From Mustelus asterias (Eukaryota), in the NCBI RefSeq assembly GCF_964213995.1, contig NC_135808.1:20336001-20400000 (forward strand): 64,000 bases of DNA, in the 5' to 3' direction. Shown piece by piece: positions 3,710 to 64,000 of this stretch. The number at the start of each line of letters is the position of its first letter. The first letter of the stretch is position 1. The notes beneath the pieces were generated by a model, which was given only the letters and a program-made list of their open reading frames with translations, did no database searches and was not told the DNA's origin. The position numbers and the translations under genes are program-made.

Positions 3710-5898
3710 AGAACATAGAACATAGAACATAGAACATTACAGCGCAGAACAGGCCCTTCGGCCCACGATGTTGCACCGACCAGTTAAAAAAAAAAACTGT
3801 GACCCTCCAACCTAAACCAATTTCTTTTCGTCCATGAACCTATCTACGGATCTCTTAAACGCCCCCAAACTAGGTGCATTTACTACTGATGCTGGCAGGG
3901 CATTCCAATCCCTCACCACCCTCTGGGTAAAGAACCTACCCCTGACATCGGTTCTATAACTACCCCCCCTCAATTTAAAGCCATGCCCCCTCGTGCTGGA
4001 TTTCTCCATCAGAGGAAAAAGGCTATCACTATCCACCCTATCTAAACCTCTAATCATCTTATATGTTTCAATAAGATCCCCTCTTAGCCGCCGCCTTTCC
4101 AGCGAAAACAATCCCAAATCCCTCAGCCTCTCCTCATAGGATCTCCCCTCCATACCAGGCAACATCCTGGTAAACCTCCTCTGCACCCTCTCCAAAGCCT
4201 CCACATCCTTCCTGTAATGTGGGGACCAGAACTGCACACAGTACTCCAAGTGCGGCCGCACCAGAGTTGTGTACAGTTGCAACATAACGCTACGACTCCT
4301 AAATTCAATCCCCCTACCAATAAACGCCAAGACACCATATGCCTTCTTAACAACCTTATCTACTTGATTCCCAACTTTCAGGGATCTATGCACACATACA
4401 CCTAGATCCCTCTGCTCCTCCACACTATTCAAAGTCCTCCCGTTAGCCCTATACTCAACACAACTGTTATTCCTACCAAAGTGAATTACCTCACACTTCT
4501 CCGCATTAAACTCCATCCGCCACCTCTCGGCCCAACTTTGCAACCTGTCTAAGTCTTCCTGCAGACTACGACACCCTTCCTCACTGTCTACCACACCACC
4601 GACTTTGGTGTCATCAGCAAATTTGCTAATCCACCCAACTATACCCTCATCCAGATCATTAATAAATATTACAAACAGCAGTGGCCCCAAAACAGATCCC
4701 TGAGGTACACCACTTGTAACCGCACTCCATGATGAATATTTACTATCAACCACCACCCTCTGTTTCCTATCCGCTAGCCAATTCCTGATCCAATTTCCTA
4801 GATCACCCCCAATCCCATACATCTGCATTTTCTGCAGAAGCCTACCATGGTGAACCTTATCAAACGCCTTACTAAAATCCATATATACCACGTCCACTGC
4901 CTTGCCCCCATCCACCTCCTTGGTCACTTTCTCAAAAAACTCAATAAGGTTAGTAAGGCACGACCTACCTGCCACAAAACCATGCTGACTATCACCTATC
5001 AATTCATTACTCTCCAAATAACTATAAATCCTATCCCTTATAATTTTTTCCAACATCTTGCCGACAACAGAAGTGAGACTCACCGGTCTATAATTCCCGG
5101 GGAAGTCTCTGTTCCCCTTCTTAAACAATGGGACAACATTCGCTAACCTCCAATCTTCTGGTACTATACCAGAGGCCAACGACGACCTGAAGATCAGAGC
5201 CAGAGGCGCTGCAATCACTTCTCTTGCCTCCCAGAGAATCCTTGGATAAATCCCATCCGGACCAGGGGATTTATCTATTTTCAGACCCTCCAGAATATCC
5301 TGCACATCCTCCTTATCAACTGTAATACTGTCTATTCTACTCCCTTGCAACCCAGTGTCCTCCTCAGCTATATTCATGTCCCCTTGCGTGAACACCGAAG
5401 AGAAATATTGGTTCAATGCTTCACCAATCTCCTCCGGTTCCACACATAACTTCCCTCTGCCATCTATAACTGGCCCTAAACTTGCCCTAACCAACCTTCT
5501 GTTCTTGACATACCTATAGAACGCCTTAGGATTCTCTTTAACCCTATCCGCCAAAGTCTTCTCATGTCCCCTTTTAGCCCTTCTAAGCTTGCTCTTCAAC
5601 TCCCTCTTAGCCAATCTAAAGCTTTCTAGTGCACTACCCGAGTGCTCACGTCTCATCCGAACATAAGCCTCCTTTTTCTTTTTAACCAACAAAGAAACTT
5701 TTTTGGTGCACCACGGTTCCCTAGCCCTACCAATTCCTCCTTGCCTGACAGGGACATACCTATCACAGACTCGCAGTAGCTGCTCCTTGAAAAAACTCCA
5801 CATGTCGGACGTTCCCAGTCCCTGTAATCTCCTAGTCCAACCTATGTTTCCTAATTCTCTCCTAATAGCCTCATAATTACCCTTCCCCCAGCTAAAAC
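3710..5898 (-). mobile_element. Young 5'-truncated CR1-clade LINE (HER1-like) with uninterrupted ORF2 RT region (663-aa ORF 3812-5803)
   Basis: RT motifs PGPDG, GNYRPVSLTS, SQHGF, DFSKAFD, GVPQGSVLGP, KFADD; CR1 C-terminus LERRRLRGDLI; 3' (TAGAACA)n tail; possible CATAT TSD; endonuclease domain absent. Confidence 0.95.
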
Positions 5899-26794: not shown

Positions 26795-28609
26795 TATGCA
26801 ACTTGAAAACACTGTGTAGAACATTATGGTGCCTGAGCATGGACAGTTAAACATGGGAATGAGGTGGTCACCATGAGTAATGCACTGTTTCCACGACAGA
26901 CTGCCCTGTTGCAATCTTTGCAAATGCAAACAGCACCAAAATAAAATCAGTCATCCGATGTCTACTTCAGCTTGTTGTCCATATTTTTACTGAAAAGATA
27001 TCAAATATTTAATGAGAATTCCCTGCTTCTTGTGTTTTTCTTTTTTAAAGCTACATTTGGTACGGTGGCGCAGTGGTTAGCACAGCATCAGGGACCCGGG
27101 TTTGATTCCCGGCTTGGGTCACTGTCTGTGTGGAATTTGCACGTTTTCCCCGTGACTGTGTGGGTTTTCTCCGGGTGCTCTGATTTCCTCCCACAATCCA
27201 AAGATGCGCGGGTTAGGTGGATTGGCCATACTAAATTGCCCCTAGTGTCAGGGGGACTGGCAAGGTAAATAAGTAGGGTTATGGGGTTGGGACCTTGGTA
27301 GAATTATTGTTGGTGCAGGCTTGATGGGCCGAATGGCCTCCTTCGGCACTGCAAGGATTCAATGATAAAATTGATCTGCATTGCAAATAAATCAATTCAA
27401 TATTTCACGTTATTCCCTTTTTCCATTGCCTTATGATTTGGAATCCGCAAGATTTGATTTGTTTCCCTTGGTAATGTGTTAACTATTGCCTCTATCCAAT
27501 ATTTTTATGGCAACTGCCAAGGTAGCCTAATATAATTTAGTGGCAGCACAGTATCACAGTAGCACTACTGCCTTGCAGCACCAGGGACCTAGGTTCGAGC
27601 CCAGTCTTGATTGACTGTGTGAAATTTGCACATTCTCCCCATGCCTGTGTGGGTCTCCTTCAGGTGCTCCAGTTTCCACCCATAGTCCAAAGTTGTGCAG
27701 GTTAGGTGGGTTGGCTATGCTAAATTGTCCTTTAGTGTCCAAAGATGTGTAGATTAGGTGGATTAGCTACGTTAATTGTGTGGGGTTACAGGGATAGGGC
27801 AGTGGAGAGGGCCTGGATAAGATGCTCTGTCAGAGAATTGGTGCAGACTCGATGGGCCAAATAGCCTCCCCTGCGCTGTAGGGATTCTATCATGCTTGGA
27901 AGCAGGAGAAACACTATTGCCTCAAATAAATGCTGAAAATAATGATGTCATCGTGGAAAGGGGAAGAGAATTAATGTTTTGGTCCAAAGATTAGACATTC
28001 ATTTTCAATTTCTGGGCTTAGACGTAGGTCGGATCTGAAAACAGGTAACTTCGGTTTGAAAAGACTCCACGCCCCCTGCTCACTTCATCCTGCTTCTAGG
28101 TTCATTTTTCACCCTGGAAAGCAGACTGGGCAAAATGGAACCTTCACGCCATAGGAACTCGACCAGTTACCCACCAGAGACAGATGAATGGATCATCAGA
28201 TGTATATATAGCAAACGGCAGACATTCGGACTGCCAATTCTAAGTGCTACTGCTTCGTCTGTTGCAACAGATTTTCCAGAAGTTTCAAAATTAAGGAACT
28301 AGTATAACTTAACATGTTTGACTCTTAGGTTAGAAGGTAAACAATGGCACCATGCTGACAAAAACAGATTTCAACACTTTGTACTATTTAGATTGCAATT
28401 CGTATTAGATAAACTAAACTTGACATCATGCAATCAAGTGCACCGCCTGGCATTTTGTTGTACAGCCGCATTGTGTAATTTCACCAAGGGCTGCGTGATT
28501 TTTTTCTTGAGGGTCACGACACAAGATGCAATCCTGCTGCTTGGTAAGGTATCTTGCGTGATTTGCACTCAGGTTGATAGCTTGGAGGCTAGCTTGCTCT
28601 CATCTGACA

Positions 28610-29105
28610 GGTACATACATATACACTCAGACTCGTGTGCACACAAGCACTCTCATGCACATACACATATACACATTCACACAAACTCAGGCTGTTTCCA
28701 TCATAGCAGGCGCCCATTTATTCTCTCTCTCACACACAAACATATTCACACTCGCAAACACACGCGAGTCACACACAGATACCCGGGTACACACCACACA
28801 AAAACTCACACCCCCGACCAAACACACACACAGGCTCTCTCACTCCCACACACACACAAATGCAAACACACACAGACTCACACAAACACTCACACAGGAG
28901 CACACACAGAAACACACGTACACATAAAAACATGCACACGCACCACACAAACACTCAAAGCCCACAAACTTTCACACAAACTCTCACTTACCTGCATACA
29001 CACATAAGCAAACACACACACAGATCACACAAACATTCACACATACGCAAGAACACAGATGCACACAGACACACACACAGACACACATACAGACACACAC
29101 AATTC
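28610..29105. repeat. Degenerate (CA)n low-complexity tract in C4 intron 1
   Basis: Direct reading; source of spurious His/Thr ORFs. Confidence 0.92.
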
Positions 29106-35184: not shown

Positions 35185-37295
35185 TTCCTTCTCGCATCAG
35201 GGCTGGTGGACAATTGAGCAATTCACTGGAGGAGCCAGCTCCACAAATATCCCCATCCTTAATGATGGAGAGGCCCAACACATCAATGCTAAAGCTAAGG
35301 CTGAAGCATTTGTAATTAACTTCTGCAAAAAGTACAGAGTGGATGAGCCATCTTGGTCTCCTCTGGAGGTCCACAGCATCTGAGATGCCACCTCTCAGCC
35401 AATTCGATTCACCCCATGTGATACGAAAAACGGCTGACGGCAATGGATAATACAAAGGTTATGGGCCCTGATAATATTCTGGCATAGTTCTGGGACGTTC
35501 TGGAGCACTGAATACGTGCTCCAGAACTTCCCATGACCCTAGCCAAGCTGTTCCAGTGCAGCTACTACACTGGAGTCTACCCGGCAATGTTGAAAATTGC
35601 CCAGGTGTGTCCTGCACATAAAAAGCAGGACAAGCCCAGCCTGGCCAATTATTGACCAAGCAGCCTACTCTCAGCCATCAGTCAAGGAATGGAAGGGGTA
35701 ATCAACAGTGTTAATAAGTGGCACTTGCTTAGCAATAACCTGCTCACTAACGGTTAGCTTGGATTCTGCCGGGGACACTCAGTTCCTGGCCTCAGTATGG
35801 CTTTGATTCATACATGGACAAAAGATCTGAGTGCCAGACGTGAGCTGAAAAATAACGGTCCTTGCCACCATGGTCACACTTGACTCGATGTAGCGTCAAG
35901 GAACCCTCGCATAACTGGTGTCAATGAGAATCAAGATGAAAACGCTCCGCTGGTTGGAGTCATGCCTGGCACAAAGGAAGATCGCTGTGGTAGTTGGAGA
36001 TCAATTAATTCAGCTCCAGCACATCACTGCAGGAGTTCCTCAGGATTGTGTCCTTGGCACAATCATCTTCAGCTTTTATTTTATTCATTTATGGGATGTG
36101 GGTGTAGCCGACTGTGTCAGCATGTATTGCCCACCCCTAACTGCCCTCCATTTCAGAGGGCATTTGAGAGTCAACCATACTGTTTTAGATCTGGAGTCAC
36201 GTATAGGGCAGACCAGGTAAGGATGGCAGATTTCCTTCTCTAAAGGGCATTACTGACCAGATGGGTTTTTAGGTTAATCGACAGTGGTTTCACGGTCATC
36301 TTTAAACGTTCAGCTCCAGTTTTTTACTGAATTCAAATCTCATCATCTGCCATGGTGGGATTTGAACCCAGGTCTCCCCCGATATTGCCTGGGGTCTATG
36401 GATTACTCATATAGCGACAATACCACTCCCCACCCCTGCTTCATGAATCAGTTTCCTTCCATCATAAGGTCAGAAGTGTAGATATTCACCGATGATTGCA
36501 CAATGTGCCACACTATTCACAACCCCCCAGATACTGAAACAGCCCATGTTCAAATGCAACCAGATCTGGACAATATCCATGCATGGGCTGACAACTGGCA
36601 AGTAACATTTGTGCCACACAAGTGCCAGGCAAAGGCCACCTCCAACAAGAGATATTTCAATGATCCCTTGACCTTCAACGGCATTACCAAGGTGGAATCC
36701 ACAATGCTCAACATCCTGGATTATCATTGACCAGAAACTGAATTGGACTAGCCATTTAAATACTGTGGCAATAGGAACAAGCCAGAGACTAGTAATCCTG
36801 CAGCGTGTAGTTGACCTCCATATTTCCTGAAAGCCTATCCGTCATCTACAGGGCACAAGTCAGGATAGTGATAGAATATTCTCCACTTGCCTGGATAAAT
36901 GCCGCTCCAACATCAGTCAAGAAGCTTGACACCATCCAAGACAAAGCACACCATCCACAAACATTCATCTCCTCCATCTCTGAAGCAATGTGTACAATCT
37001 ACACGATGTAGGAGCTCACAATTTCGGCAGCACCTTCCAAAACCACCACAACTACCATCTAGAAGGGGAAGGGCAGCAGGCACACCAAACACCAGCACCA
37101 GAAGGTTTCTCTCCATAATGCTCACGATACTGATTTGAAATATATCGCCATTGTTTCACTGCCTCTGAGTCCCTCACAGCACTGTGGGTGTACATATGAT
37201 TCAAGAAGGCAGCTCACCATCACCTTCTCAATGGAACTAGGCATGGACAATAAATGCTGGTCCAGCCAGCAACTTTCACATCCCATCAATGCATT
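35185..37295 (+). mobile_element. Old degenerate CR1-group LINE (second family), interrupted by a SINE at about 36080-36437
   Basis: Remnants LRWLES.LAQRK..VVVG.Q......ITAGVPQ..VLG, QPDLDNIHAWADNWQVTFVPHKCQA, IYRAQVR...EYSPLAW..AAPT..KKLDTIQDKA; an antisense fragment of this family lies at about 24485-25110. Confidence 0.85.
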
Positions 37296-47877: not shown

Positions 47878-47920
47878 ATGGATTCCAGATGCATAGTGTG
47901 GATACTGTACTTTTGCTCTG
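47878..47920 (+). CDS. NCR3: NKp30/NCR3-like receptor, leader exon (MDSRCIVWILYFCS-G)
   Basis: ATG, short hydrophobic leader, GTAAGT donor; 43 nt, phase 1 joins the V exon to give ...FCSGMFTEDINVTQSP. Confidence 0.75.
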
Positions 47921-48601
47921 GTAAGTACCGATTGCATACTTCGGTCAGAGAAGGTAACATCTCAAAAAGGTGGTTTAAACAGGCATTCGTGAGGCGTGGT
48001 CTACAATGTAAAGAGTAGTGCAACTTAGCAAGGAAAGTAAGACAATGAAAGTGCACAGAGATAGTTAATTATGGAAACATAGAAAGGTGACAGTGCGTAA
48101 AGAGGAGCTGCCCGGGGAGGTGGTGGGAGCAGGTATGATAGCGGCATTTAAGGGACATCTAGACGAATACATGGGAATGGACTCAGGAAGTGCATACGGT
48201 TTTAGCTTACATAGAAACCCTACAGTGCAGAAGGAGGCCATTTGGCCCATTGAGTCTGCACCGACCACAATCCCGCCCAGCCCCTATCCTCGTAGCCCCA
48301 CGTACTTACCCTGCTTGCCCCCCCTGACACTAAGGGTCAATTTAGCATGGCCAATCCACCTAACCCGCACATCTTTGGACTGTGGGAGGAAACCGGAGCA
48401 CCTGGAGGAAACCCAGGTAGGCAATGGTGGTGCAGGCATCACGATCGGCGCAGGCTTGAAGGGCCGAAGGGCTTGTTCCTGTGCTGTACTGTTCTTTGTT
48501 CTTGTTCTCTTTGTTCATTCAGCCCATCAGGTCCTTTAGGAAGGAAATCTGCCGTCCTTACCCGGTCTGGCCTACATGTGACTTCAGATCCAGAGTGATG
48601 T

Positions 48602-48830: not shown

Positions 48831-50431
48831 TTAACCACAGTGATGTGGTTGATTCTCAAATGCCCTCGGGTAACTTGGGATGGGCAATGAATTCGAGCCA
48901 GCCAGTGACACCCATGTCCCATGGGGGGATCTCATGGAGACTAATAAAATTGTCACAGGACTAGACAGGGTATTTGCAGGGGAGATGTTCCCGATGGTGG
49001 GGGAGTCCAGAACCAGGGGTCGCAGTCTGAGGATTCAGGGTCGACCATTTAGGATGGAGATGAGGAGACATTTCTTTACCCAAATAGTGATGAGCCTGTG
49101 GAATTCATTACCACAGGAAGTAGTTGATGCCAAAACATTGAATGTATACAAGAGGTGGCTGGATATAGCACTTGGGGCGAAGGGGATCAAAAGTTATGGG
49201 AGAAAGCAGGATTAGTCTATTGAGTTGGACGATCAGCCATGATCGTAATGAATGGAACAGCAGGCTCGAAAGGCCAAATGGCCTCCTCCTGTTCCTATCT
49301 TCTATGTTTCCAGGAATAAAAACTTGGGGCGGCACGGTGGCACAATGGTTAACACTGCTGCTTCACAGCTCCAGGGACCTGGGTTCGATTCCCGGCTTAG
49401 GTCACTGTCTGAGTGGAATTTGCACATTCTCCTTGTGTCTGCATGGGTTTCCTCCGGGTGCTCCAGTTTCCTCCCACGTTCCAAAGATGTGCAGGTTCGG
49501 TTGATTGGCCATGTTTAAATTGCCCCTTAGTGTCATGAGATGTGTAGGTTAGAGGGCTTAGTGGGTAAAATATGTAGTGATATGGGGGTAGAGCCTGGGT
49601 GGGATTGTGGTTGGTGCAGACTCGATGGGCCGAATGGCCTCTTTCTGTACTGTAGCGTTTCTAAGTCTGCGCCGGCCAAAAAAAACCTTGCCATTCGTTT
49701 TAATCCCACTTTCCAGCACTTGGTCCCGAGCCTTTCAGGTTCCAGTGCTTCACTTACAGATCCAGATATCTTTTCAATGGTTTCATTGTTTCGACCACCA
49801 GCTTAGGCAGTGAATTGCAGACACCCATCACCCTCTGGGTGAAAAGGTTTCTCCTCACATCCCCTGTCATCCTTCTATCAAATCCTCTTAAATCCATGCC
49901 TTCTGGTAAGTGACACCTCAGCCAGGGGAAACTAGTCTTTCCTGTCTATCCTGTGTAGGCCGCTCATAATTATGGAGCACCTTAATTAGATCACCCTTCT
50001 CTGTCCTAAAGAAAAAGAACCCCAGCCTATCCAATTTCTCCTCCCACCTAGTTTTGTTAGATTAAATTAGGGACAAAGGACAGTACACATGTTTGGAGTT
50101 CTTAGAATAGAAACATGGAATTTGTGTATCCTCCTTGAACCAGCTGAGAACACAGAGGGCTATCAACTCACTGGTGGACAAATGGTACCTCCAATGCTCA
50201 TCACTCCTTCAGCCCTGCACTGGCATATGAATCTAACATACATGTGATACTGGAGGGAGTCTCCAATCCATAAGCTTGACAAAGGGCCGTGGGTGGAAAA
50301 AAATGATTTCCAAACAAGTGATAGTTATAAAGTTGGCTGGTCTATTATGCCTTCCAATTGAGATACTGGGAAGTATTCAATCATGATTGTTGGGTTCTGT
50401 TAATGAACCAGAAAGGTGCACATCTGAGCCT

Positions 50432-50967
50432 TGTGTGTGTGTGTGTGTCTGAGAGAGAGAGAGAGAGAGTATATGTGCGTGTGAGTGTTTATGTGCGAGT
50501 GTGTGTGTGTATGAATGTGTGTGTGTAAGTGTTTGTGTGTGTGTGAGTGTTTGCGTGTGTGTGCATGTGATTGTGTGTGAGTGAGTGTGCGTGAGTGAGT
50601 GTGTGTGTCACTGTGTGTATGTGTGTGTGAGAGAGTGTCTGTGAGAGGGTGTGTGTGTGAGGGAGAGTGTGTGTGAGTTTGTGTGAGAGAGTGTGTGTGT
50701 TTGTTTGAGTGTGTGTGTGTGAGTGAGTGCATGTGAGTGNNNNNNNNNNNNNNNNNNNNNNNNNNNNNNNNNNNNNNNNNNNNNNNNNNNNNNNNNNNNN
50801 NNNNNNNNNNNNNNNNNNNNNNNNNNNNNNNNNNNNNNNNNNNNNNNNNNNNNNNNNNNNNNNNNNNNNNNNNNNNNNNNNNNNNNNNNNNNNNNNNNNN
50901 NNNNNNNNNNNNNNNNNNNNNNNNNNNNNNNNNNNNNNNNNNNNNNNNNNNNNNNNNNNNNNNNNNN
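50432..50967. repeat. Degenerate (GT)n tract running into an assembly gap (N 50740-50967)
   Basis: Direct reading. Confidence 0.92.
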
Positions 50968-51506: not shown

Positions 51507-51845
51507 GAATGTTTACAGAAGACATCAACGTTACTCAAAGCCCGCTCTTTACCAATGCCACCGAGGGGCAGTCGGTGCTGCTGAACTGCACGTATGAAGG
51601 GCCCTTCGGAGTCGGATTCTTCAGGTGGCACAAAAACACTAGAGACGGAGTGGAGGTCACCGACCAAGCTGTGGAATTCCGAGGGCGGGTGTCCCGGGCC
51701 AGTGCCGATGCCTTTAAGGAAAAGAGGGAGGCCTCCATTCACATAAAGGACTTGAGGCTTTACGATTCAGGGACATATTACTGCCTAGTGGAACTAATGG
51801 AGCTTGAGGGAAAATATGGACCAGGGACAACACTTAATGTAGTGC
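51507..51845 (+). CDS. NCR3: NKp30/NCR3-like single Ig V domain (germline VJ type)
   Basis: CAG acceptor, GTGAGT donor, 339 nt, phase 1-1; canonical Cys (LNCTY), Trp (FRWHK), DSGTYYC and J-like YGPGTTLNV; NKp30-like GxEV....EFRGR and AsIHIkDlR; three NxT sequons. Confidence 0.88.
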
Positions 51846-55916: not shown

Positions 55917-56045
55917 GCAAAGCTCCGGAAGAATCGAATACAGAGGAATCCAGCGAATTGCCGAAATACTATACACTCATGTGTATCGGTGCTGGGGCAT
56001 TGGGTGTTTTTATTCTGTTCTCTGCATATTACTGCGTGAGAAAAG
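55917..56045 (+). CDS. NCR3: NCR3-like stalk + transmembrane exon (RKAPEESNTEESSELPKYYTLMCIGAGALGVFILFSAYYCVRK)
   Basis: Strong polypyrimidine/TAG acceptor, GTATGA donor, 129 nt, phase 1-1; about 24-aa hydrophobic helix followed by RK stop-transfer. Confidence 0.85.
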
Positions 56046-56447
56046 GTATGAAAGAACATTATTCCGCTTCCTTGTCTACCCGTAAAATGGATGCATGCAC
56101 GATGGACGGCACGGTGGAGCAGTGGTTAGCAGTGCTGCCTCACAGTGCCAGGGACCTGGATTCGATTCCCAGCTTGGGTGGCTGTCTGTGCGTAGTCTGC
56201 ACATTCTCCCCGTGTCTGCATGGGTTTCCTCTGGCCCTCCCACAGTGCGAAATAAAGTTAGCTGCATTGGCCATGCTAAATTCTCCCTCAGTGTATCCGA
56301 ACGTGTGGCAACTTGAGGATTTTCACAGTAACTTCATTGCAGTAAGCCTACCTGGGACAAGACTAAATTTAAAATACAAATGAAACTAGGACATAAATAA
56401 GGGCATGTGTGAATTCTCACTCCCCTCTTTCATGTTTATATCAACAG

Positions 56448-56469
56448 CTCATGGTTCACAGATTCAGAG
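56448..56469 (+). CDS. NCR3-like tail micro-exon A1 (AHGSQIQR)
   Basis: CAG/GTTGGT, 22 nt, phase 1->2. Confidence 0.7.
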
Positions 56470-56601
56470 GTTGGTCAATCTCCCCTCCACCCTCACCCTT
56501 TGCCCACAAGCATCCCTCTGTTTTTTTCAGAAATTGCCATATATTGCATTTTGTACTTTAAAATAATATGGTTTTTAAAAAGAAATCTGTTTGTGATTCA
56601 G

Positions 56602-56639
56602 AAGCAACGATCGGACTTTTGAAAATATTCCTCACGCTG
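56602..56639 (+). CDS. NCR3-like tail micro-exon B1 (SNDRTFENIPHA)
   Basis: CAG/GTAAGT, 38 nt, phase 2->1. Confidence 0.72.
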
Positions 56640-57008
56640 GTAAGTGACTTGTTCGACATGCATTATTTTACTGCTGGAAACACGTTTCAGTAATGGGCTG
56701 TAAAATAGTCTAGCTGAAATTAGGTAGTGAATAGTTAGCGAGTCAGCATGACTCAGAGGTTTCTGCTTTATTATGGATGGTCTTACCTTGCTTATCTTTG
56801 GTGAAGAGTCCCAATCATTCAGATGGTCCCCTAGTGTGACCGGTGTTCCTCCTTAACTGTTTTAAACATTAACTTTTAGGTTATAACATTTATATTTTGT
56901 GATCTGCAGTGTACTATTTCCTGATTATGTTGAGTAAGATACATTAAATTCTACACTACATATTTTAATATTCAGCAAATGGAGAAGAACAGAAATTGAA
57001 TCAGTTGG

Positions 57009-57345
57009 GGGTGGCATGGTGGCACAATGATTAGCACTGCTGTCTCACAGCGCCAAGGACCCAGGTTCCATCCCCGACTTGGGTCACTGTCTAAATGGGG
57101 TTTGCACATCCTCCCCGTGTCTGCATGGGTTTCCTCCGTGTGTTCTGGTCCCGCCCCGCCCCCCCCCCCCCCCCCCCCGGCACACTCCAAAGATGTGCGG
57201 GTTAGGTTGATTGGCAATTGCCCCTCAGTGTCAGGGGGACTAGCAGAGTAAATATGTGGGGTTACGGGGATAGGTGGGATTGTGGTCAGTACAGACTCGA
57301 TGGGCTGAATGGCCTCCTTCTGCACTGTAGAGATTCTATGATTCT
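57009..57345 (+). mobile_element. HE1-type SINE with internal poly-C expansion, in an NCR3-like tail intron
   Basis: Head/core/tail recognisable. Confidence 0.88.
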
Positions 57346-57475
57346 TTGATTGATTAGATAAACGGGAGTGGTAAAGCTTAGTTGAAATCAGTATCGTATC
57401 TTAGCTGGATTGTGGTTGGAAGGCTGTAAATAAGAGAAGTTAATGATAGCTGTTCTCTATTGCCTTTGATTTTAG

Positions 57476-57503
57476 CAGCACCGGATCCTTCAGCATTACA
57501 ACG
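57476..57503 (+). CDS. NCR3-like tail micro-exon A2 (AAPDPSALQR)
   Basis: TAG (NAGNAG alternative at 57479)/GTCAGT, 28 nt, phase 1->2. Confidence 0.68.
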
Positions 57504-57613
57504 GTCAGTGGACATTGAAGACCAATCTCATAATTTCTTCATTTAAAAAAATTAATTGATATGCTTTCCGACATTCAATTCAGTGACATTATTGTTTTCC
57601 ATTGAATCTAAAG

Positions 57614-57648
57614 CAATTGTGCGCCTTGCGATGTTGTCAATTTGCATG
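57614..57648 (+). CDS. NCR3-like tail micro-exon B2 (NCAPCDVVNLH)
   Basis: AAG/GTGAGT, 35 nt, phase 2->1. Confidence 0.68.
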
Positions 57649-57872
57649 GTGAGTATGTAATAGTAAGTCAATCTCCTTAACAGTTCGATTACTGAATCAT
57701 CATTCAGGCATTCAGAATGATATTTCTCATTAGGAAAGTACTTCATTATATTTTCGAACAATTATTGCATTTAGGAGGTTCATGTGATTGTCACATCTCC
57801 TCACAGTACCAAACGTGCTTGGCGTGTTTGCATTTAATGATAAATCTTAGTTTTTGACTTTTTTTCCCACAG

Positions 57873-57894
57873 AATTAGACACAGAAGTGCAAAG
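57873..57894 (+). CDS. NCR3-like tail micro-exon A3 (ELDTEVQR)
   Basis: Strong TTTTTTTCCCACAG acceptor/GTTAGT, 22 nt, phase 1->2. Confidence 0.75.
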
Positions 57895-57988
57895 GTTAGT
57901 TTCTGGTTATGGCAGTAATGAGACTTTTAAAAAAAATAGTTCTGCGCTTTTGTTTCATATATATGCAATTTTGTTTTATCTTTGGCAG

Positions 57989-58038
57989 ACCCTGTGTGGA
58001 TAGCAGTGTTTCCGCCTATGATGAAATTAACCTACCTG
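57989..58038 (+). CDS. NCR3-like tail micro-exon B3 (PCVDSSVSAYDEINLP; ITIM-like SAYDEI)
   Basis: CAG/GTAAAT, 50 nt, phase 2->1. Confidence 0.75.
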
Positions 58039-58192
58039 GTAAATAAAGCACATTCATAGTACTGAACCTTCTTCTCAGCAGGGTTAGGGAGTACATGTGC
58101 TCTCATGTCTTTTGCATCAGAGCAATGTCATAGGTGATCCGTGACATATGCCAAGCAAACTCCATTTACTCTGGTGGGACATTGTATAATTA

Positions 58193-58515
58193 ATCATAGA
58201 ATCCCTACAGAGCAGAAGGAGGCCATTCGGCCCATTGAATCTGTATTGACGACAATCCCAGCCAGGCCCTATGCCCGTAACCCCACACATTTACCCTGCT
58301 AATCCCCTGACACTAAGTTGCAATTTAGCTTGGCCAATCAACCAAACCCACACATCTTTGGAGTGTGGGAGCAAACCAGAGCACCAGGAGTAAACCGATG
58401 CAGACATGGGGAGTACGTGCAAACTCCACACAGACAGTGACCTGAGATCAAAATTGAACCCCGGTCCCTGGCGCTGTGAGGCAGCAGTGCTAACCACTGT
58501 GCTGCTATGCCACCC
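58193..58515 (-). mobile_element. HE1-type SINE, antisense, in an NCR3-like tail intron
   Basis: Head/core/tail recognisable; inverted relative to the copies at 57009 and 58704. Confidence 0.88.
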
Positions 58516-58703
58516 AATATAAATGGAAGATAATGCCATGTGATTCATGTGATGCCCCTTCCACCATGTATCTCCCCCAACCCTTGTTTATCAACTAACT
58601 ATTCAACTCAGCCATAGCTTAGCTCAATGACCCAGCCTCCACTGCAGAAGAGAATTTCACAGACGAACGACTGCCTGAGAAAATAAAAATGGTCCTAATC
58701 TAA

Positions 58704-59045
58704 TGGGCGGCACGGTAGCACAGTGGTTAGCCCTGCTGCTTCACAGCTCCAGGGACCTGGGTTCGATTCCCGGCTTGGGTCACTGTCTGTGTGGAGTTTG
58801 CACATTCTCCTCGTGTCTGCGTGTGTTTCCTCCTGGTGCTCTGGTTTCCTCCCACAGTCCAAAAATGTGCGGGTTAGGTTGATTGGCCATGCTAAAATTG
58901 GCCCTTAGTGTCCTGGGATGTGTAGATTAGAGGGACTAGCGGGTAAATATGTAGGGATATGGGGGTAGGGCCTGGATGGGATTGTGGTCGGTGCAGATTC
59001 GATGGGCCGAATGGCCTCTTTCTGTACTGTAGGGTTTCTATGATT
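58704..59045 (+). mobile_element. HE1-type SINE
   Basis: Near-consensus copy. Confidence 0.9.
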
Positions 59046-59426
59046 TCTACGCCTTAGATGGGACACCCCTTCTTCGTAAACTATGTCCCCCAGTTCTAGA
59101 TTTGCCCACAAGGGAGAAACATCCTCCCAGTATCCAACCTGCCAAGTCCCCTCAGGATCTTATGTGTTGCAATAAGATCACATCTCATTCTTCTACACTG
59201 AATATTAATCCAACTGTCTGAGTGATAATTTATTTCCAATATGGTTTCCAATAGCATAACTAATCCCCTCATTGAAAAAAAACTCAAGTTTCCCTCTGGT
59301 ACTGTTGTCAATGTAAACCTAAGTTCTATAATCAGTAACCCACCCGTCATGGAAACAGTCTCTTTTATTCAATGTGTCTTCAGATGGATTGTATTAATTT
59401 TTCATCGTTATTCATTGTTCTTGCAG

Positions 59427-59448
59427 AATTTGATCCGACTTTGGAATG
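59427..59448 (+). CDS. NCR3-like tail micro-exon A4 (EFDPTLEW)
   Basis: TTGCAG/GTTGGT, 22 nt, phase 1->2. Confidence 0.72.
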
Positions 59449-59550
59449 GTTGGTGAATCTCAGATTTGATATCTTTTGTCACTTTGATTGGAATTGATCT
59501 GTAGTCTGAGTAAAAATGTAGTGACAACGATCTCTTTTTTTATCACCAAG

Positions 59551-59585
59551 GGATGAGATAGGATATGAAGAAACCATCCTGGATG
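59551..59585 (+). CDS. NCR3-like tail micro-exon B4 (DEIGYEETILD)
   Basis: T-tract + AAG/GTGAGT, 35 nt, phase 2->1. Confidence 0.75.
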
Positions 59586-59796
59586 GTGAGTTTCACCTAT
59601 GAAAGATTTGTGCAATTTTTCCAAAGGCCGCCGTTCAGTAAGATTTCGGTTTCTGGCTAAATAGCTCAGGAGTAGCTTGTGTAATTGGCTGTTTGCTAAT
59701 GCATTGTCCGCCACCTCCTCGTCAAACTCAGACATGGCTAAATGCAATTTTGTTACATAGTTGTGGTCTCTTTATTTATTATTTGTATCTTCACAG

Positions 59797-59818
59797 ACTT
59801 TCCCCAGCCTTTTCAATG
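59797..59818 (+). CDS. NCR3-like tail micro-exon A5 (DFPQPFQC)
   Basis: TCACAG/GTGAGT, 22 nt, phase 1->2. Confidence 0.75.
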
Positions 59819-59924
59819 GTGAGTAGAAATCGGCTAAGATTTCACTTTCTTCCTTCGTGTTCATCTAAGGTGTCCCACATGTTTGGAACCAATGTCACTC
59901 TAATCTTTTTCCTTTGTTGTTCAG

Positions 59925-59959
59925 TGAGGAAGAGTTCTATTCCGAAGTTGCTCAGCTTG
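59925..59959 (+). CDS. NCR3-like tail micro-exon B5 (EEEFYSEVAQL)
   Basis: Long pyrimidine tract + CAG/GTAAGG, 35 nt, phase 2->1. Confidence 0.75.
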
Positions 59960-61130
59960 GTAAGGATTTTTCGTTTTCTCCTTGGCAGATAGTATTGCCC
60001 ATATTAGCCTTTCAAGTACATTTGTTCGAATTTCATTTAGTCCGGTTATGAAAAGAATTAAGACATTCTCCTCGTGTCTGCATGGGTTTCCTCCGGGTGC
60101 TCCGGTTTCCACCCGCACTCCAAAGATGTGCGGGTTAGGTGGCTTGGCCATGCTAAATTGCCCCTTAGTGCCAGGGGGACTAGCGAGGGTAAATACATGC
60201 GGTTATGGGGATAGGGCCTGGGTGGAGATTATGGTCGGTGCAGACTCGATGGGCCGAATGGCCTCTTTCTGCACTGTAGGGGATTCTATGATTCTATGAT
60301 TCCTTGTTGGCGTCACTGACAAGGCCAGCATTTATTGTCCACATGGATTGCCTTTGAAACAATTGAGATGTTTGCTGTACCACTTTAGACATCAGTTATG
60401 GATTAATTACATGTGAAATTGAAAAGCAAGTCGCGTGGTGACCTTGCAACCATAGCCGTTTGTTGGAAAAACCCAACTGGTTCACTGATGTTCTTTAGGG
60501 AAGGAAATCTGCCGTCCTTACCTGATTTGGCCTGCATGCGATCCCAGAGCCACAGCAATGTGGCTGACTCTTAACTGCCCTCCGAAAAGGCTGTGCAGTT
60601 CAAGGGCAATTAAGGATGGGCAACAAACGTTGACATTAACAGCGATGCCCATGCCCCACGAAATAATTAAAGTAAAAACATTGCTGTGAGGCTGGAGGCA
60701 CAGACAACCGAGGGATGGCAGATTTCCTTGAAGAACGTACGTGAAGCAGATAAGAGTTTTGCCACAATCTATTAAAACGCAATAAAGGGAACTCCGTTAT
60801 GTAGCCAACACCTATCGCTGTAGTTAATGAGGGAAAAATAAAGGTCCTTCATGTTAAAGTATATTTTACTATTGTACCGTCAAGTTTTGTCCTGCAATAT
60901 AAAATGTACTGTTCCTTTTTTGTCTTATCGATAAGGTATACGCTGTAACCAAACTATATCGTGTACCATTAGACATTGTACGCAGCGAATGTTACAAACT
61001 GCCTGTTAATGTTATGTGATTGTTTGAACTACAGAATGCTTATCCTCAACGCCTGTATATTAGAACCGCCATGTGCATTTATAGCAACCTATCTGTTGCT
61101 CGTTTCAGAATTGTATTCTTTTGTTTTTAG

Positions 61131-61243
61131 ATGCGATAGATCTGGTTGGTGCGGTGTATGAGACCGATTTAAAGGGTGTGGTACGTACACTTACAGTTAC
61201 TGAAATCGAGGCGAAGAATATATTTCCTGTTTATATATTATGA
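61131..61243 (+). CDS. Candidate terminal exon of the NCR3-like gene (DAIDLVGAVYETDLKGV...VYIL*)
   Basis: TTTTGTTTTTAG acceptor, open in phase 1, another Tyr motif (VYETD), AATAAA at 61321. Uncertain: an internal GTACGT donor and an alternative acceptor at 60935 exist. Confidence 0.3.
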
Positions 61244-64000
61244 TTTAGACTCAACCCCCCGCCCCCCTCCCCCCATGCCAATCAACTGCTTCAGAGTAAA
61301 AACCGCCAGGATTTTCACAAAATAAACCCGCTAATCATTTACCCCGTGGCGGAAGTCCATTATGTAAACCCTGCCTCATTGGGAGATAATTTCACATCAC
61401 AATAGTGGCAACAACGACGTGCATTTAAAGAGCGCATTTGTTTTACGTGTATTATTTCATGAGCTGATGGCGTATCTGACATGGCCAGAGAGTGTTGCTC
61501 CTTCCAAATTGCCCTTGACAAGGTGTCGGGAGTTGTCATCTCGAACCACCAAAGGTCGTGTTGTGTCAGAATCCCACTGTACTGTTAAAGGCGGGGGGTT
61601 TCCAGGATTCTAAACGAGTGTCAGAGAAGGAATCGCGATATAGTTGGAAGGATTGTGTACGGCTTTGAGGAGAATGTACAGATTGGGCCGTTCCCATATG
61701 TCGGCTGCCCATGCCCTTCTCGGTGTTAGTGGTCGCAGGTTTGGAATGAGCTGACGAAGAAGCTTTGATGATTTCGTCTTGTAGAGGGTACATACTAGTG
61801 CCACTGTGTAGCGGTGGTGAAGGAAGCGAATGTTAAGGGTTAGTGGTCGGGATGCCAGTCAAGTTAGTGGCTTTCTTCTGGATGGTGTCAATTTAGTTGA
61901 GTGCTGGAAGCGCACTCTCCCTGGACAATGGATGTCATAGTGGTTAGCATTGCTGCCTCAGCTCCAGGGACTCGGGTTCAATTCCGGTCTTGGGTAACTG
62001 TGTGGAGTTTGTAAATTCTCCCCGTGTCTGCGTAGGATTTCTTCGGATCCTCCGGATGCTCCGGTTTCCTCCCACAGTCCAAAGATGTCCAGGTGGATTG
62101 TCCATGAAAATTGTCCCTTAGTATCCCAGGATGTTTAGATTAGATGGATTGGCCATGGGAAATGTGTCGGTGTACGGGGATAGGGAGATGGAGAGGACCT
62201 GGGTAAGATACTCAGACAGTCGGTTCAATGGGCCGAATGGCCTGTTCTGTACTTTAGGGAAATTACGAATCTATAATCACAGTCCTAATTGGTGCCTTGT
62301 AGGTAGTGGACACTTCTGGGGACACAGGCGGTGAGTTACTCGCTCAGAATCCCAGCCTCCGATCTGCTCTTCCAACCACAGCACTAAGATGGCTAGTCCA
62401 GTTCAGGTTCTGGTCAATGGTGACCCCTAGAGGTTGAATGTTTGGAATTCAGAGATTGTAACGCCGTTGAATTTTAAAGTCAGGTGTTTAAGTGCGTCAT
62501 AGCCTTTGCCTGGCACTTGTGTGGTGCAAATATTGGTAAAACATCTCAATACACTTCATAGCAGCCAATACGAAATAGAATTCGAGTCCCAGAACTAGAG
62601 ACTAGGATAGGCGAACATAAGGTGGGTCAAAGAAATAGACTTCTAGAAATGTCTTAAAAAAGGCGAGTCGAGACAAAGCAGAGAGGCCTCTGCAGAGAAT
62701 TGCAGGGATTCGGGTTCAGAGGGCAGGCCGCATTCTTATCCAACACATCAATCCCTTATCTCTTAGGGATTACTCATATCATTTTATAATTCTCTGGACG
62801 TCTACGTATAATTGATGTGGGTGGCGGGACGTGCTAGTGGCAATGTTACCGGGCTAGCAATCCGCCCAGGCTAATGTTCTGGAGTCATGGGTTGCAACTC
62901 CACCACGTTGCTGGAATTTACATTCACTTAATTAAAAATAAATCTGCATCTGAAAGTTGATCTTAGTCTCAGTCACTATAAAACGATAATTGAAAGTCTT
63001 CATAAAGCAGACGAATTACTGGCCTTTAGAAACTGGAATATTGAACATAAAAGCGAGAACTGATCATAAACCTATATAAACTGTGCTTTGGTTTCAACGC
63101 CCATGGTTTTGGGCGCCACAATTTAGGATGGATGTGAAGGTTGCAGAGAGGTCGCATAATACATACATGAATATGTTTCCAGATATGCGGAACATCAGTT
63201 GCATGGTAAAATTGGGGAAGGTGGGGTTATTCAGCTTGCCCAAGATTTCGTGGAGATTTGATAGATGTATTCTCGATCCATCCACCAGGGGCAGCAGTTC
63301 CTACTTATTCTGTGCAGACCCCTCTCTCCTGTCTCTCACTAAGCCAATGTTGTATCCACACGCCCATTGTCTTGTTAATGTCATGAACTTAGAATTTGCT
63401 AACAGACATACTGCCAAAGGCTATGGGTAAGTTCATACACACAACATTCGCCACGCTATGCTCATCAATCCTTTCTGTCAGTTCATCAAATAATTCAATC
63501 AATTAATCAAGCACAATTTTTCTTTAACAAATCAGTGCTGACTTCTTTGATGAGCCGCCAATTTTTTGGAGTCGTGGGGGGCGGGGGGATGGGGGGGGGG
63601 GGCGGGTGGGGGGGTGGGGGGAGACTATGGTGTAATGCTAATGCTACTGGTCTAGTAATCCAGAGATCCAGCCAAATCTTTTGGGGGCAACTCTTCAAAT
63701 AACACCTTGGGAATTTTAAAAATTTGTTCATGGAATGTGGGTGTCACTGGCTGGTCCAGCATTTATTGCCCATCCCTGAGGGTACTTAAGAGTGAACGAC
63801 ACTGCTGTGGATCTGGAGTCACATATACATAGGCCAGACCAGGTGAAGGCGACAGATTTCCTTCCCTCAAGGGCATTAGTGAGCTAGATGAATTTTTACG
63901 ACAATTAACAATGGTGTCATAGTCATTAGACTTTTCATTCTGGATTTTTATTGAATTCAAATTTCACCATATGCCATGGTGGCATTCGAACCCAGGTCCC

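Follow-up and report, generated by a model that had tools for sequence, protein, structure and literature searches.

A probable shark NKp30 (NCR3)-family receptor gene with a long cytoplasmic tail predicted from five tandem pairs of micro-exons

To our knowledge, NKp30 is the one natural-killer receptor that can be traced from sharks to humans. The mammalian receptor is activating and adaptor-dependent: it has a charged (Arg) transmembrane (TM) residue and a short tail, and signals via CD3 zeta / FcR gamma. A nurse shark NCR3 family (e.g. QTT61898.1) was reportedly published by Kinlein et al. in 2021. ITIM-bearing inhibitory IgSF receptors are recognized by the consensus (S/I/V/L)-x-Y-x-x-(I/V/L) together with an uncharged TM segment, and once tyrosine-phosphorylated they recruit SHP-1, SHP-2 or SHIP; acidic surroundings are typical of tyrosine-kinase substrates. 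The chicken BG genes are butyrophilin-like and MHC-linked; they consist of a leader, one V and one TM exon followed by duplicated very small exons, the exon number ranging from 13 to 36 among paralogues (PMC4046983). The cytoplasmic tail of PECAM-1 (CD31) is spread over many short exons, numbers 9-16; its tyrosines fall on different exons, and its ITIMs lie at Y663 and Y686 (PMC2132561, PMC5314882). Two-exon ITAMs exemplify a tyrosine signalling unit that occupies two exons and has been multiplied through duplication; the pattern is YxxL/I, 6-8 residues, YxxL/I, and the exon border splits the first tyrosine module (PMC4536121).

The window analysed here, i.e. the whole 64-kb stretch of Mustelus asterias DNA, probably carries one shark NKp30 (NCR3)-family receptor gene, and the micro-exon array within it would be the cytoplasmic-tail part of that gene. 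The predicted gene order is a leader, one V exon, one TM exon, ten constitutive micro-exons of two alternating types (A and B), and then at least one more exon. The recognized exons are as follows:

47878..47920, forward strand: leader (signal peptide) exon, with the ATG at 47878 and a phase 1 end followed by GTAAGT
51507..51845, forward strand: single V-set (VJ-type) Ig exon, 339 nt, phase 1 to 1 (Pfam V-set, E 6.5e-12)
55917..56045, forward strand: stalk and TM exon, 129 nt, phase 1 to 1
56448..56469, forward strand: A1, 22 nt, phase 1 to 2, donor GTTGGT
56602..56639, forward strand: B1, 38 nt, phase 2 to 1, with Phe as motif residue
57476..57503, forward strand: A2, 28 nt, phase 1 to 2
57614..57648, forward strand: B2, 35 nt, phase 2 to 1, with Cys as motif residue here and in horn shark
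57873..57894, forward strand: A3, 22 nt, phase 1 to 2, donor 8/9, acceptor 15/18
57989..58038, forward strand: B3, 50 nt, phase 2 to 1, with the best conserved motif, S-x-Y-D-E-I-N, here and in horn shark
59427..59448, forward strand: A4, 22 nt, phase 1 to 2, donor GTTGGT
59551..59585, forward strand: B4, 35 nt, phase 2 to 1, with Tyr as motif residue
59797..59818, forward strand: A5, 22 nt, phase 1 to 2, rich in proline (F-P-x-P-F-Q)
59925..59959, forward strand: B5, 35 nt, phase 2 to 1, Tyr here and His in horn shark

The V exon, which is the sole one in the 64-kb window, has a J-like strand G-x-G-T-x-L at its 3' end, and its best four of 271 PDB matches are human NKp30 (E 8e-12 to 1.1e-11), followed by TCR alpha and SIRP alpha at E 1e-8 or weaker. 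The nearest named public proteins are shark NCR3-like; the closest is a horn shark (Heterodontus francisci) 'NCR3-like' model, retrieved by phmmer with the V exon (P0004, 72% identity), and both lines agree with an earlier note on this DNA, which had called the gene NKp30-like. In tblastn against the window, the nurse shark NCR3 protein P0016 has 43% identity. Further marks of the NKp30 / NCR3 family are binding of B7H6 and linkage to the MHC; no MHC marker was identified within the 64-kb window.

Each micro-exon is flanked by AG and GT and open in its phase, all ten are 22-50 nt and therefore at or under a micro-exon limit given as 51 nt (PMC4317164), and the A-to-B introns measure 132, 110, 94, 102 and 106 nt. 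These positions, lengths and phases reproduce those of the earlier note, as do its frame arithmetic (every A exon is 1 mod 3, every B exon 2 mod 3) and the residue reached by counting seven full codons back from each B exon's 3' end (F, C, Y, Y and Y). AG/GT flanks and an open frame alone do not set the array apart from chance: with the same length classes and intron ranges, 462 A-B pairs are found on the forward and 482 on the reverse strand of the window, in chains of up to 76. What singles out the ten micro-exons from the background is splice-site quality, the mean donor score being 7.2/9 (4.37 for 1297 background GTs) and the mean acceptor score 13.3/18 (8.84 for 1227 background AGs), and not one of 100000 resamples reaches the array's mean for either donors or acceptors. 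At donor ≥6 and acceptor ≥10, thresholds that were chosen after the exons had been seen, 8 pairs are left on the forward strand and 0 on the reverse; 6 of the 8 are the five modules (A2 is found twice, via a tandem acceptor), and they form the sole chain in 64 kb.

Support that is independent of splice thresholds comes from orthology with horn shark, which we regard as the decisive evidence for the predicted tail exons. P0004 belongs to an isoform set (XP_067865360 to XP_067865369) named 'natural cytotoxicity triggering receptor 3-like' or 'signal-regulatory protein beta-2-like', and in this RefSeq gene the coding order is leader, V domain and TM, followed by all five A/B modules in the sequence seen in the window. 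The proteins are automatic, computational RefSeq models, and we found no paper describing them; the suggestion that such a tail was not visible anywhere does not hold, since its architecture is already present in that annotation. In tblastn of the horn shark protein P0161, the leader (residues 1-15, 73% identity at 47878-47922), V, TM, B1, A2, B2, B3 and A5 exons are matched in order. When each exon peptide was aligned locally to P0161 and compared with 500 shuffles, the best match was collinear for 9 of 11 exon peptides (TM plus micro-exons), consistent with the ten micro-exons being coding exons of a long tail, as had been proposed. The TM exon matches residues 134-171 with a score of 94 that none of the 500 shuffles reached (tblastn E 3e-8), and B1 (180-191; score reached by 6/500 shuffles), A2 (193-200; 4/500), B2 (202-206; 12/500), B3 (225-236; 7/500), A5 (259-264; 14/500, with 5/6 residues identical) and B5 (266-273; 17/500) are matched as well. 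The best matches of A1 (174-178) and A4 (242-245) are collinear and weak taken singly, their scores being reached by 238 and 273 of the 500 shuffles; A4 passed the splice filter. For A3 (1/6 residues identical) and B4 (3/11 identical to horn shark B4) the best local match lies elsewhere, and A3 is placed from position and phase only.

Inferred horn shark exon sizes equal those in the window except for B3, and tail identity is 17/32 over A residues and 22/61 over B residues. The horn shark isoforms show one Arg difference exactly at the B1 junction and one Ala difference at the A2 junction, which are the junctions where the window has tandem acceptors: cag then AAG at B1, and tag then CAG at A2, where the splice filter recovers both. 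Counted against a ten-exon tail is P0001, a catshark model that covers the orthologous V and TM and ends directly behind the TM; gene finders would miss such tails because of their geometry of two micro-exon types.

The hydrophobic stretch of the TM exon peptide contains no charged residue, so the receptor probably works without a borrowed ITAM adaptor, unlike mammalian NKp30, signalling or sorting by way of its own tail being more likely. The charged TM and short tail of the mammalian type define mammalian NKp30 function, not necessarily the shark family; the window gene has neither. Its predicted tail, at least 93 full codons long, is acidic (20 D+E vs 1 K+R) and has three spaced YxxI/V/T sites. 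One of them, S-x-Y-D-E-I in B3, fits the ITIM pattern in both the window and horn shark, so that at least one such motif occurs together with an uncharged TM, as in ITIM-type receptors; B4 and B5 of the window fall outside the pattern, with T at +3 in B4 and E at -2 in B5. The conserved site would, after phosphorylation, recruit SH2 proteins. The arrangement is not that of an ITAM, as successive tyrosines (B3-B4, B4-B5) are 19 residues apart and the motif lies wholly inside each B exon.

The modules are mutually related, as serial duplication of a two-exon unit predicts. Comparisons between different modules give a right-anchored score of 2.33 for B exons (null -9.27) and 2.75 for A exons (null -4.88), reached in each case by 0/2000 shuffles, and in horn shark paralogues an A1/B1-like unit recurs in tandem, in one to three additional copies. 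Since the modules are alike above shuffles, an old serial duplication, before the two sharks split, is supported. At the DNA level the alignment of the five units is weak, and no direct repeats besides SINEs were found, so the case for duplication is one of peptide pattern and exon geometry. In the mechanism that we propose, the five units would stem from duplications predating the divergence of the Mustelus asterias gene from that of horn shark, after which tyrosines would have been gained or lost unit by unit. The A exon, usually 22 nt, would supply a short linker rich in proline and glutamine, and after an intron of ~100 nt the B exon, usually 35 nt, would supply an acidic motif in which Y, F, H or C is followed, at +3, by I or V. 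Because an A exon shifts the frame by +1 and a B exon by +2, only a complete A/B pair keeps the frame, and the short A-B intron probably aids joint recognition of the two halves. More speculatively, and in our estimate rather doubtfully, the pair may be a two-exon signalling cassette, self-contained and locked in frame, that undergoes independent multiplication and decay in shark NCR3 paralogues. Copy numbers run from one to three tyrosine-free ones in some horn shark genes to five in the window gene, and the motif residue switches between species, being Y in horn shark B1 and F in the window, and H and Y, respectively, in B5. If this is true, the paralogues would be a natural receptor series of graded phosphotyrosine valency within one V-domain family, to which pair skipping in particular cell types would add an extra layer.

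The name 'phosphotyrosine cassette' given to the unit earlier goes too far: tyrosine occupies three of five modules in each species, but these are a different three (B1, B3 and B4 in horn shark; B3, B4 and B5 in the window), and the A1/B1-like units of the paralogues have T or I instead. Because tyrosine is not conserved in B1 and B5 and is absent from the paralogue units, phosphotyrosine docking may not be the purpose of the module. It is conceivable, though on balance unlikely, that the B module serves as a YxxΦ-type or acidic sorting/endocytosis signal rather than for SH2 docking, or else as an acidic peptide motif, [D/E/N]-I-[P/N], that does not depend on tyrosine, A being a proline-rich spacer or ligand; this reading concerns function alone and leaves the exon model intact. 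Over the two sharks, I or V stands at +3 in 8/10 modules and Y at the motif position in only 6/10, the paralogue units retain D/N-I-P where T or I replaces Y, and the A modules are proline-rich, the tail having 14 P in 95 residues in horn shark and 9 in 93 in the window. Set against this, S-x-Y-D-E-I-N of B3 is kept exactly in both sharks, in acidic surroundings of the sort that tyrosine kinases favour. A separate proposal, that the five frame-neutral pairs are cassettes included, skipped or re-paired (any A with any later B) to tune the number of tyrosine motifs, we consider improbable: none of the nine horn shark RefSeq models drops or re-pairs any of the ten exons, and residues 173-276 are invariant except for the two one-residue acceptor shifts, which, with TM-exon skipping (a 43-residue segment is absent from 3/9) and alternative 3' ends, account for the differences among the models. 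The exon-length arithmetic does permit skipping, but the frame neutrality of a pair is no evidence of regulated skipping, since a pair must duplicate frame-neutral to survive. In favour of the proposal are the weaker A-exon donors (GTTGGT twice, 6/9), as often seen at regulated exons, the alternative splicing of the horn shark gene elsewhere (TM skip, tandem acceptors, three 3' ends), and a 14-residue in-frame tail segment by which paralogues P0155 and P0046 differ. In PECAM-1, too, skipping of tail exons that carry tyrosines is possible and has functional consequences (PMC2132561).

The preferred reading, i.e. a long tail from ten constitutive exons, also has to supply a 3' end: the tail as first described has no stop codon, and therefore at least one further exon was missing from the description. 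The horn shark 3' exons are not recognizable in the window, with the exception of one candidate:

61131..61243, forward strand: candidate for the next coding exon, perhaps the last, with entry in phase 1 and TGA at 61241-61243; low confidence

Among 241 AG sites read in phase 1 (59990-63940), 61131 ranks top against the horn shark post-B5 exon, with a score of 19 (next 8); its acceptor scores 15/18 and an AATAAA lies downstream at 61321-61326. Free local alignment did not single out 61131, and no homologue of the horn shark terminal exons stands out in 59960-64000. The latter result, together with SINE insertions in three introns, would fit a silent or decaying paralogue with intact-looking but unused exons and no proper 3' end. 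Such a copy seems very improbable, as 13/13 recognized exons are open with splice sites that are canonical and above background, both tandem acceptors are retained, and a plausible continuation, with stop codon and AATAAA, exists at 61131. We keep 61131..61243, at low confidence, as a candidate 3' end.

Together, these results suggest that sharks also join the NKp30 V domain to an uncharged TM and a long tail that may signal alone, an arrangement conserved in two sharks. The fivefold repeat of two exon types with complementary phases would be a clear example of the growth of a signalling tail by exon-pair duplication. For annotation, 22-nt and 35-nt exons ~100 nt apart may serve as a template for other cartilaginous fish tails; for immunology, the gene offers a testable set of tyrosines, one conserved and the others species-specific.

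The likeness to mammalian NKp30 and nurse shark NCR3 lies in the single VJ-type V domain, whose nearest solved structures are human NKp30; it does not extend to the uncharged TM and the predicted tail of over 100 residues from ten micro-exons, and the tail of nurse shark P0016 is likewise short, unlike that of the window gene. By analogy, the tail is of a kind with PECAM-1, chicken BG and the two-exon ITAMs. PECAM-1 is similarly an IgSF receptor with a tail from several short exons (ten in the window), and the Y-S-E-V core of its second ITIM recurs in B5 of the window; its tail exons, however, do not repeat a single two-exon unit in tandem, and its tail splicing variation has been shown experimentally, whereas any such variation in the window tail is putative. 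Chicken BG shares the leader/V/TM order followed by an array of very small exons arising by duplication. Each BG exon is a single unit of 21 or 24 nt that is frame-neutral by itself and codes for coiled-coil heptads; in the window, by contrast, two exon types of complementary phase alternate (22/28 and 35/38/50 nt), and the peptides, which have no heptad pattern, would make an acidic, proline-rich and probably unstructured tail. The two-exon ITAMs of CD3 zeta (three ITAMs) and Xenopus FcR gamma (an added ITAM), together with the tails of Xenopus FcR-like (XFL) receptors, are likewise examples of tyrosine units in two exons multiplied by duplication; in the window, the exon border leaves the tyrosine motif unsplit, the tyrosines are ~19 residues apart, and there are five units, on the ligand-binding chain itself.

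SINEs are abundant in the window, which is vertebrate DNA of shark type and carries a single receptor gene, on the forward strand; a tblastn search with 17 family proteins found no further V exon in the 64 kb. The exons upstream of the tail, and one of the tail micro-exons, lie as follows.

47878-47920, + strand: leader exon, placed by a horn shark (Heterodontus francisci) tblastn match
51507-51845, + strand: single V-set exon of 339 nt, phase 1 to 1, with a Pfam V-set match at E 6.5e-12
55917-56045, + strand: stalk/transmembrane (TM) exon, 129 nt, phase 1 to 1, read in the sequence
59427-59448, + strand: micro-exon A4, open in its phase

Downstream of the TM exon, ten micro-exons alternate as five A/B pairs or modules (A1/B1 to A5/B5), the A exons being 22, 28, 22, 22 and 22 nt long and the B exons 38, 35, 50, 35 and 35 nt; all ten are AG/GT-flanked and each is open in its own phase. 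On re-reading, their positions, lengths and flanks agreed exactly with those in the earlier note, a first reading of the sequence alone. The A-to-B introns measure 132, 110, 94, 102 and 106 nt, and the B-to-A introns 836, 224, 1387 and 211 nt; SINE copies have enlarged the longer of the latter, the copies at 57009-57343 and 58705-59045 (direct copies, 82-92% identical) accounting for the B1-A2 and B3-A4 introns. More partial SINE copies, some recognised by eye, lie near 56100-56300, 58190-58500 and 60066-60290. Elsewhere in the window, a 663-residue intact ORF on the minus strand (3812-5803) is a candidate LINE reverse transcriptase by its appearance, and His/Thr-rich pseudo-ORFs at 50400-50732 and 28318-29007 derive from dinucleotide-type simple repeats, the former adjoining a run of N at 50740-50967. 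In the leader intron, a six-residue peptide at 47995-48012, read in the frame of the leader ORF, agrees with horn shark A1 in five of six residues (E 28); this is probably a chance match.

Splice-site quality is what sets the ten exons apart. The earlier note had described the exons by their AG/GT flanks, open frame and lengths, and this bare criterion performs no better than chance: with the same length classes and intron ranges, 462 A-B pairs are found on the plus strand of the window and 482 on the minus strand, and chains of such loosely defined pairs reach 76 in length. By a simple consensus count, the donors of the ten exons average 7.2 out of 9 (versus 4.37 for 1297 background GTs) and their acceptor tracts 13.3 out of 18 (versus 8.84 for 1227 background AGs); neither mean was attained in any of 100000 resamples of ten. 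A filter of donor at least 6 and acceptor at least 10, which serves as a control and not as proof since the cut-offs were picked with the exons already known, leaves eight pairs on the plus strand and none on the minus strand; six of the eight are the five modules (A2 appearing twice through a tandem acceptor), which form the sole chain remaining. The two other pairs, at 36189-36354 and 50213-50415, are isolated and probably due to chance; the second has a simple repeat and an assembly gap as neighbours. No sixth A/B pair 3' of B5 passes the filter.

The decisive evidence for the ten exons is their orthology with the exons of a horn shark gene. When the V exon was run through a full phmmer search, 523 proteins passed E <= 0.001 and 9 of these also E <= 1e-30. 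Among these hits, the horn shark model P0004 (XP_067865368.1, 276 residues) has a V domain 72% identical to that of the window and a C-terminal half that resembles the predicted tail; its cluster mates and the 319-residue P0159 cluster add up to nine models for a single gene (XP_067865360 to XP_067865369), named either 'natural cytotoxicity triggering receptor 3-like' or 'signal-regulatory protein beta-2-like'. Searched against the window by tblastn, the longest of these models matches, in order, the leader, V (E 6e-49), TM (E 3e-8), B1, A2, B2, B3 and A5, each match falling on a predicted exon. Of 11 exon peptides aligned locally one at a time, 9 match that model best at the collinear position, the exceptions being A3 and B4. 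Horn shark exon sizes, inferred from the alignment and from isoform breakpoints, equal those of the window except at B3, which is two codons longer in the horn shark. Identity in the tail is 17/32 residues for the A exons and 22/61 for the B exons, compared with 64-72% for V. Further, horn shark isoforms differ by one residue at two junctions (Arg at A1/B1, Ala at B1/A2; each acceptor shift in two of the nine models), and at precisely these junctions the window has tandem, NAGNAG-type acceptors (B1, 56597-56604, cag-AAG; A2, 57471-57478, tag-CAG), which provides an independent tie between the junctions of the two species.

Single exons or public proteins served as the queries in these searches, never the joined exon model, and later searches of the window excluded a short segment of the TM-A1 intron. 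A motif scan of 167 collected proteins found the A5-type motif only in the nine horn shark isoform models. With P0004 as query, by a method that needs shared five-residue words, relatives came from horn shark, catshark and white shark only; the same kind of search, in which a blank says little, gave no homologues of the ORF around the V exon and none of the horn shark tail alone beyond the horn shark itself. There was no NCBIfam match, as expected of a bacterial library. The catshark model P0001 (Scyliorhinus canicula XP_038671257.1) fuses two V-TM units, the second of which is 63% identical to the window V exon, has a similar TM and ends a few residues past it; P0001 is probably two merged genes with a micro-exon tail missed.

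As a rule, alternative isoforms in RefSeq derive only from aligned transcripts; if that applies to the horn shark gene, its RNA includes the ten exons. For the shark of the window, a look-up of sequencing runs returned none catalogued as RNA that contains this stretch. All nine models keep all ten, and residues 173-276 are invariant save for the two one-residue shifts, so the proposal that pairs are skipped and re-joined combinatorially is without support and has some evidence against it. The models do show three different 3' ends, and the 43-residue TM exon is skipped in three of the nine. The window TM exon is phase-symmetric, and its skipping would join the V domain directly to the 'cytoplasmic' tail; the horn shark form that lacks it may be secreted or may reflect splicing noise. 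Two isoforms of a horn shark paralogue (P0155 and P0046; X5 and X6) differ in a 14-residue in-frame tail segment, indicating that cassette-type variation occurs in a paralogue tail, though outside the A/B units.

The tail as given is incomplete, because B5 ends in phase 1. In the horn shark, B5 is followed by a 17-residue exon and then by one of two terminal exons. Free local alignment of these sequences to 59960-64000 gave scores that 12, 80 and 68 of 100 shuffles attain, none of them significant, and an E-L-Y-S-x-V match at 61109 was discarded because it did not exceed chance. When the sequence following each of 241 AG sites was translated in phase 1, anchored at the exon start, position 61131 scored 19 against the horn shark 17-residue exon and the next best 8; it is singled out by this start-anchored test only. 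Its acceptor tract, at 15/18, is among the best, and the codon split between B5 and 61131 is Asp, as in the horn shark. We retain it only as a candidate for the next tail exon:

from 61131, + strand: candidate exon from the start-anchored comparison; stop TGA at 61241-61243, AATAAA at 61321-61326

Recent duplication of the five units is rejected, because they no longer align at the DNA level (57% mean column identity, with little past the splice sites) and the only direct repeats among them are SINE copies and short chance-like matches. Their peptides are another matter: 3'-anchored, gapless scores between modules are 2.33 for B exons (shuffle mean -9.27) and 2.75 for A exons (-4.88), attained by 0 of 2000 shuffles; the scores pool two species that are not independent, which overstates the number of observations, and the positional signal is real. 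At the motif position, the seventh full codon from the 3' end of each B exon, B1 to B5 have F, C, Y, Y and Y in the window and Y, C, Y, Y and H in the horn shark, and three residues further on I, V, I, T and V versus I, F, I, I and I; the register is fixed in both sharks. Horn shark paralogues (P0046/P0155 and P0153) carry, right after the TM, one to three tandem A1/B1-like units, each made of Q-x-Q-R and then [D/N]-I-P, with T or I at the tyrosine place. On this evidence the two-exon unit is old and multiplies within the family, its five-unit array having arisen before the two sharks diverged; tyrosine is not a constant feature of the unit. The earlier note's picture of an NKp30-like receptor with real coding micro-exons and an old serial duplication holds; its combinatorial tuning is unsupported.

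As to function, the V domain is closest to human NKp30 among solved structures, and the TM contains no charged residue. Over 93 full codons the tail is acidic (20 D+E, 1 K+R) and includes 9 prolines and 3 tyrosines. In B3, S-x-Y-D-E-I-N is identical in both sharks, a motif that we take to fit the ITIM pattern; the YxxT/V sites of B4 and B5 lie in acidic surroundings, and their distance of about 19 residues differs from that within an ITAM. Such a receptor would not pair with an ITAM adaptor and would instead carry its own docking sites in the tail, with the A modules as putative proline-rich spacers. A live rival is that the YxxΦ-like motifs serve in sorting, or that the acidic-Ile-Pro/Asn core has a role independent of tyrosine.

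The module architecture is already present, uncommented, in the RefSeq horn shark annotation. The literature searched (without supplements) gave no description of alternating exon types of complementary phase, five times over, on an NKp30-family chain; a prior one could exist, as the key shark NCR3 study (Kinlein 2021) and two Flajnik-group studies fell outside the search. Known systems offer separate likenesses: the PECAM-1 tail is encoded by exons 9-16, with its tyrosines on separate, alternatively spliced exons (PMC2132561; PMC5314882); in chicken BG genes, 21-nt exons numbering 13-36 come after leader, V and TM (PMC4046983); every ITAM is split over two exons, and ITAMs have multiplied in TCR zeta and Xenopus FcR gamma (PMC4536121); and Xenopus FcR-like tails span one to five exons, one cDNA lacking the TM yet retaining the tail (PMC2413239). 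The shark gene combines the ideas of all four.
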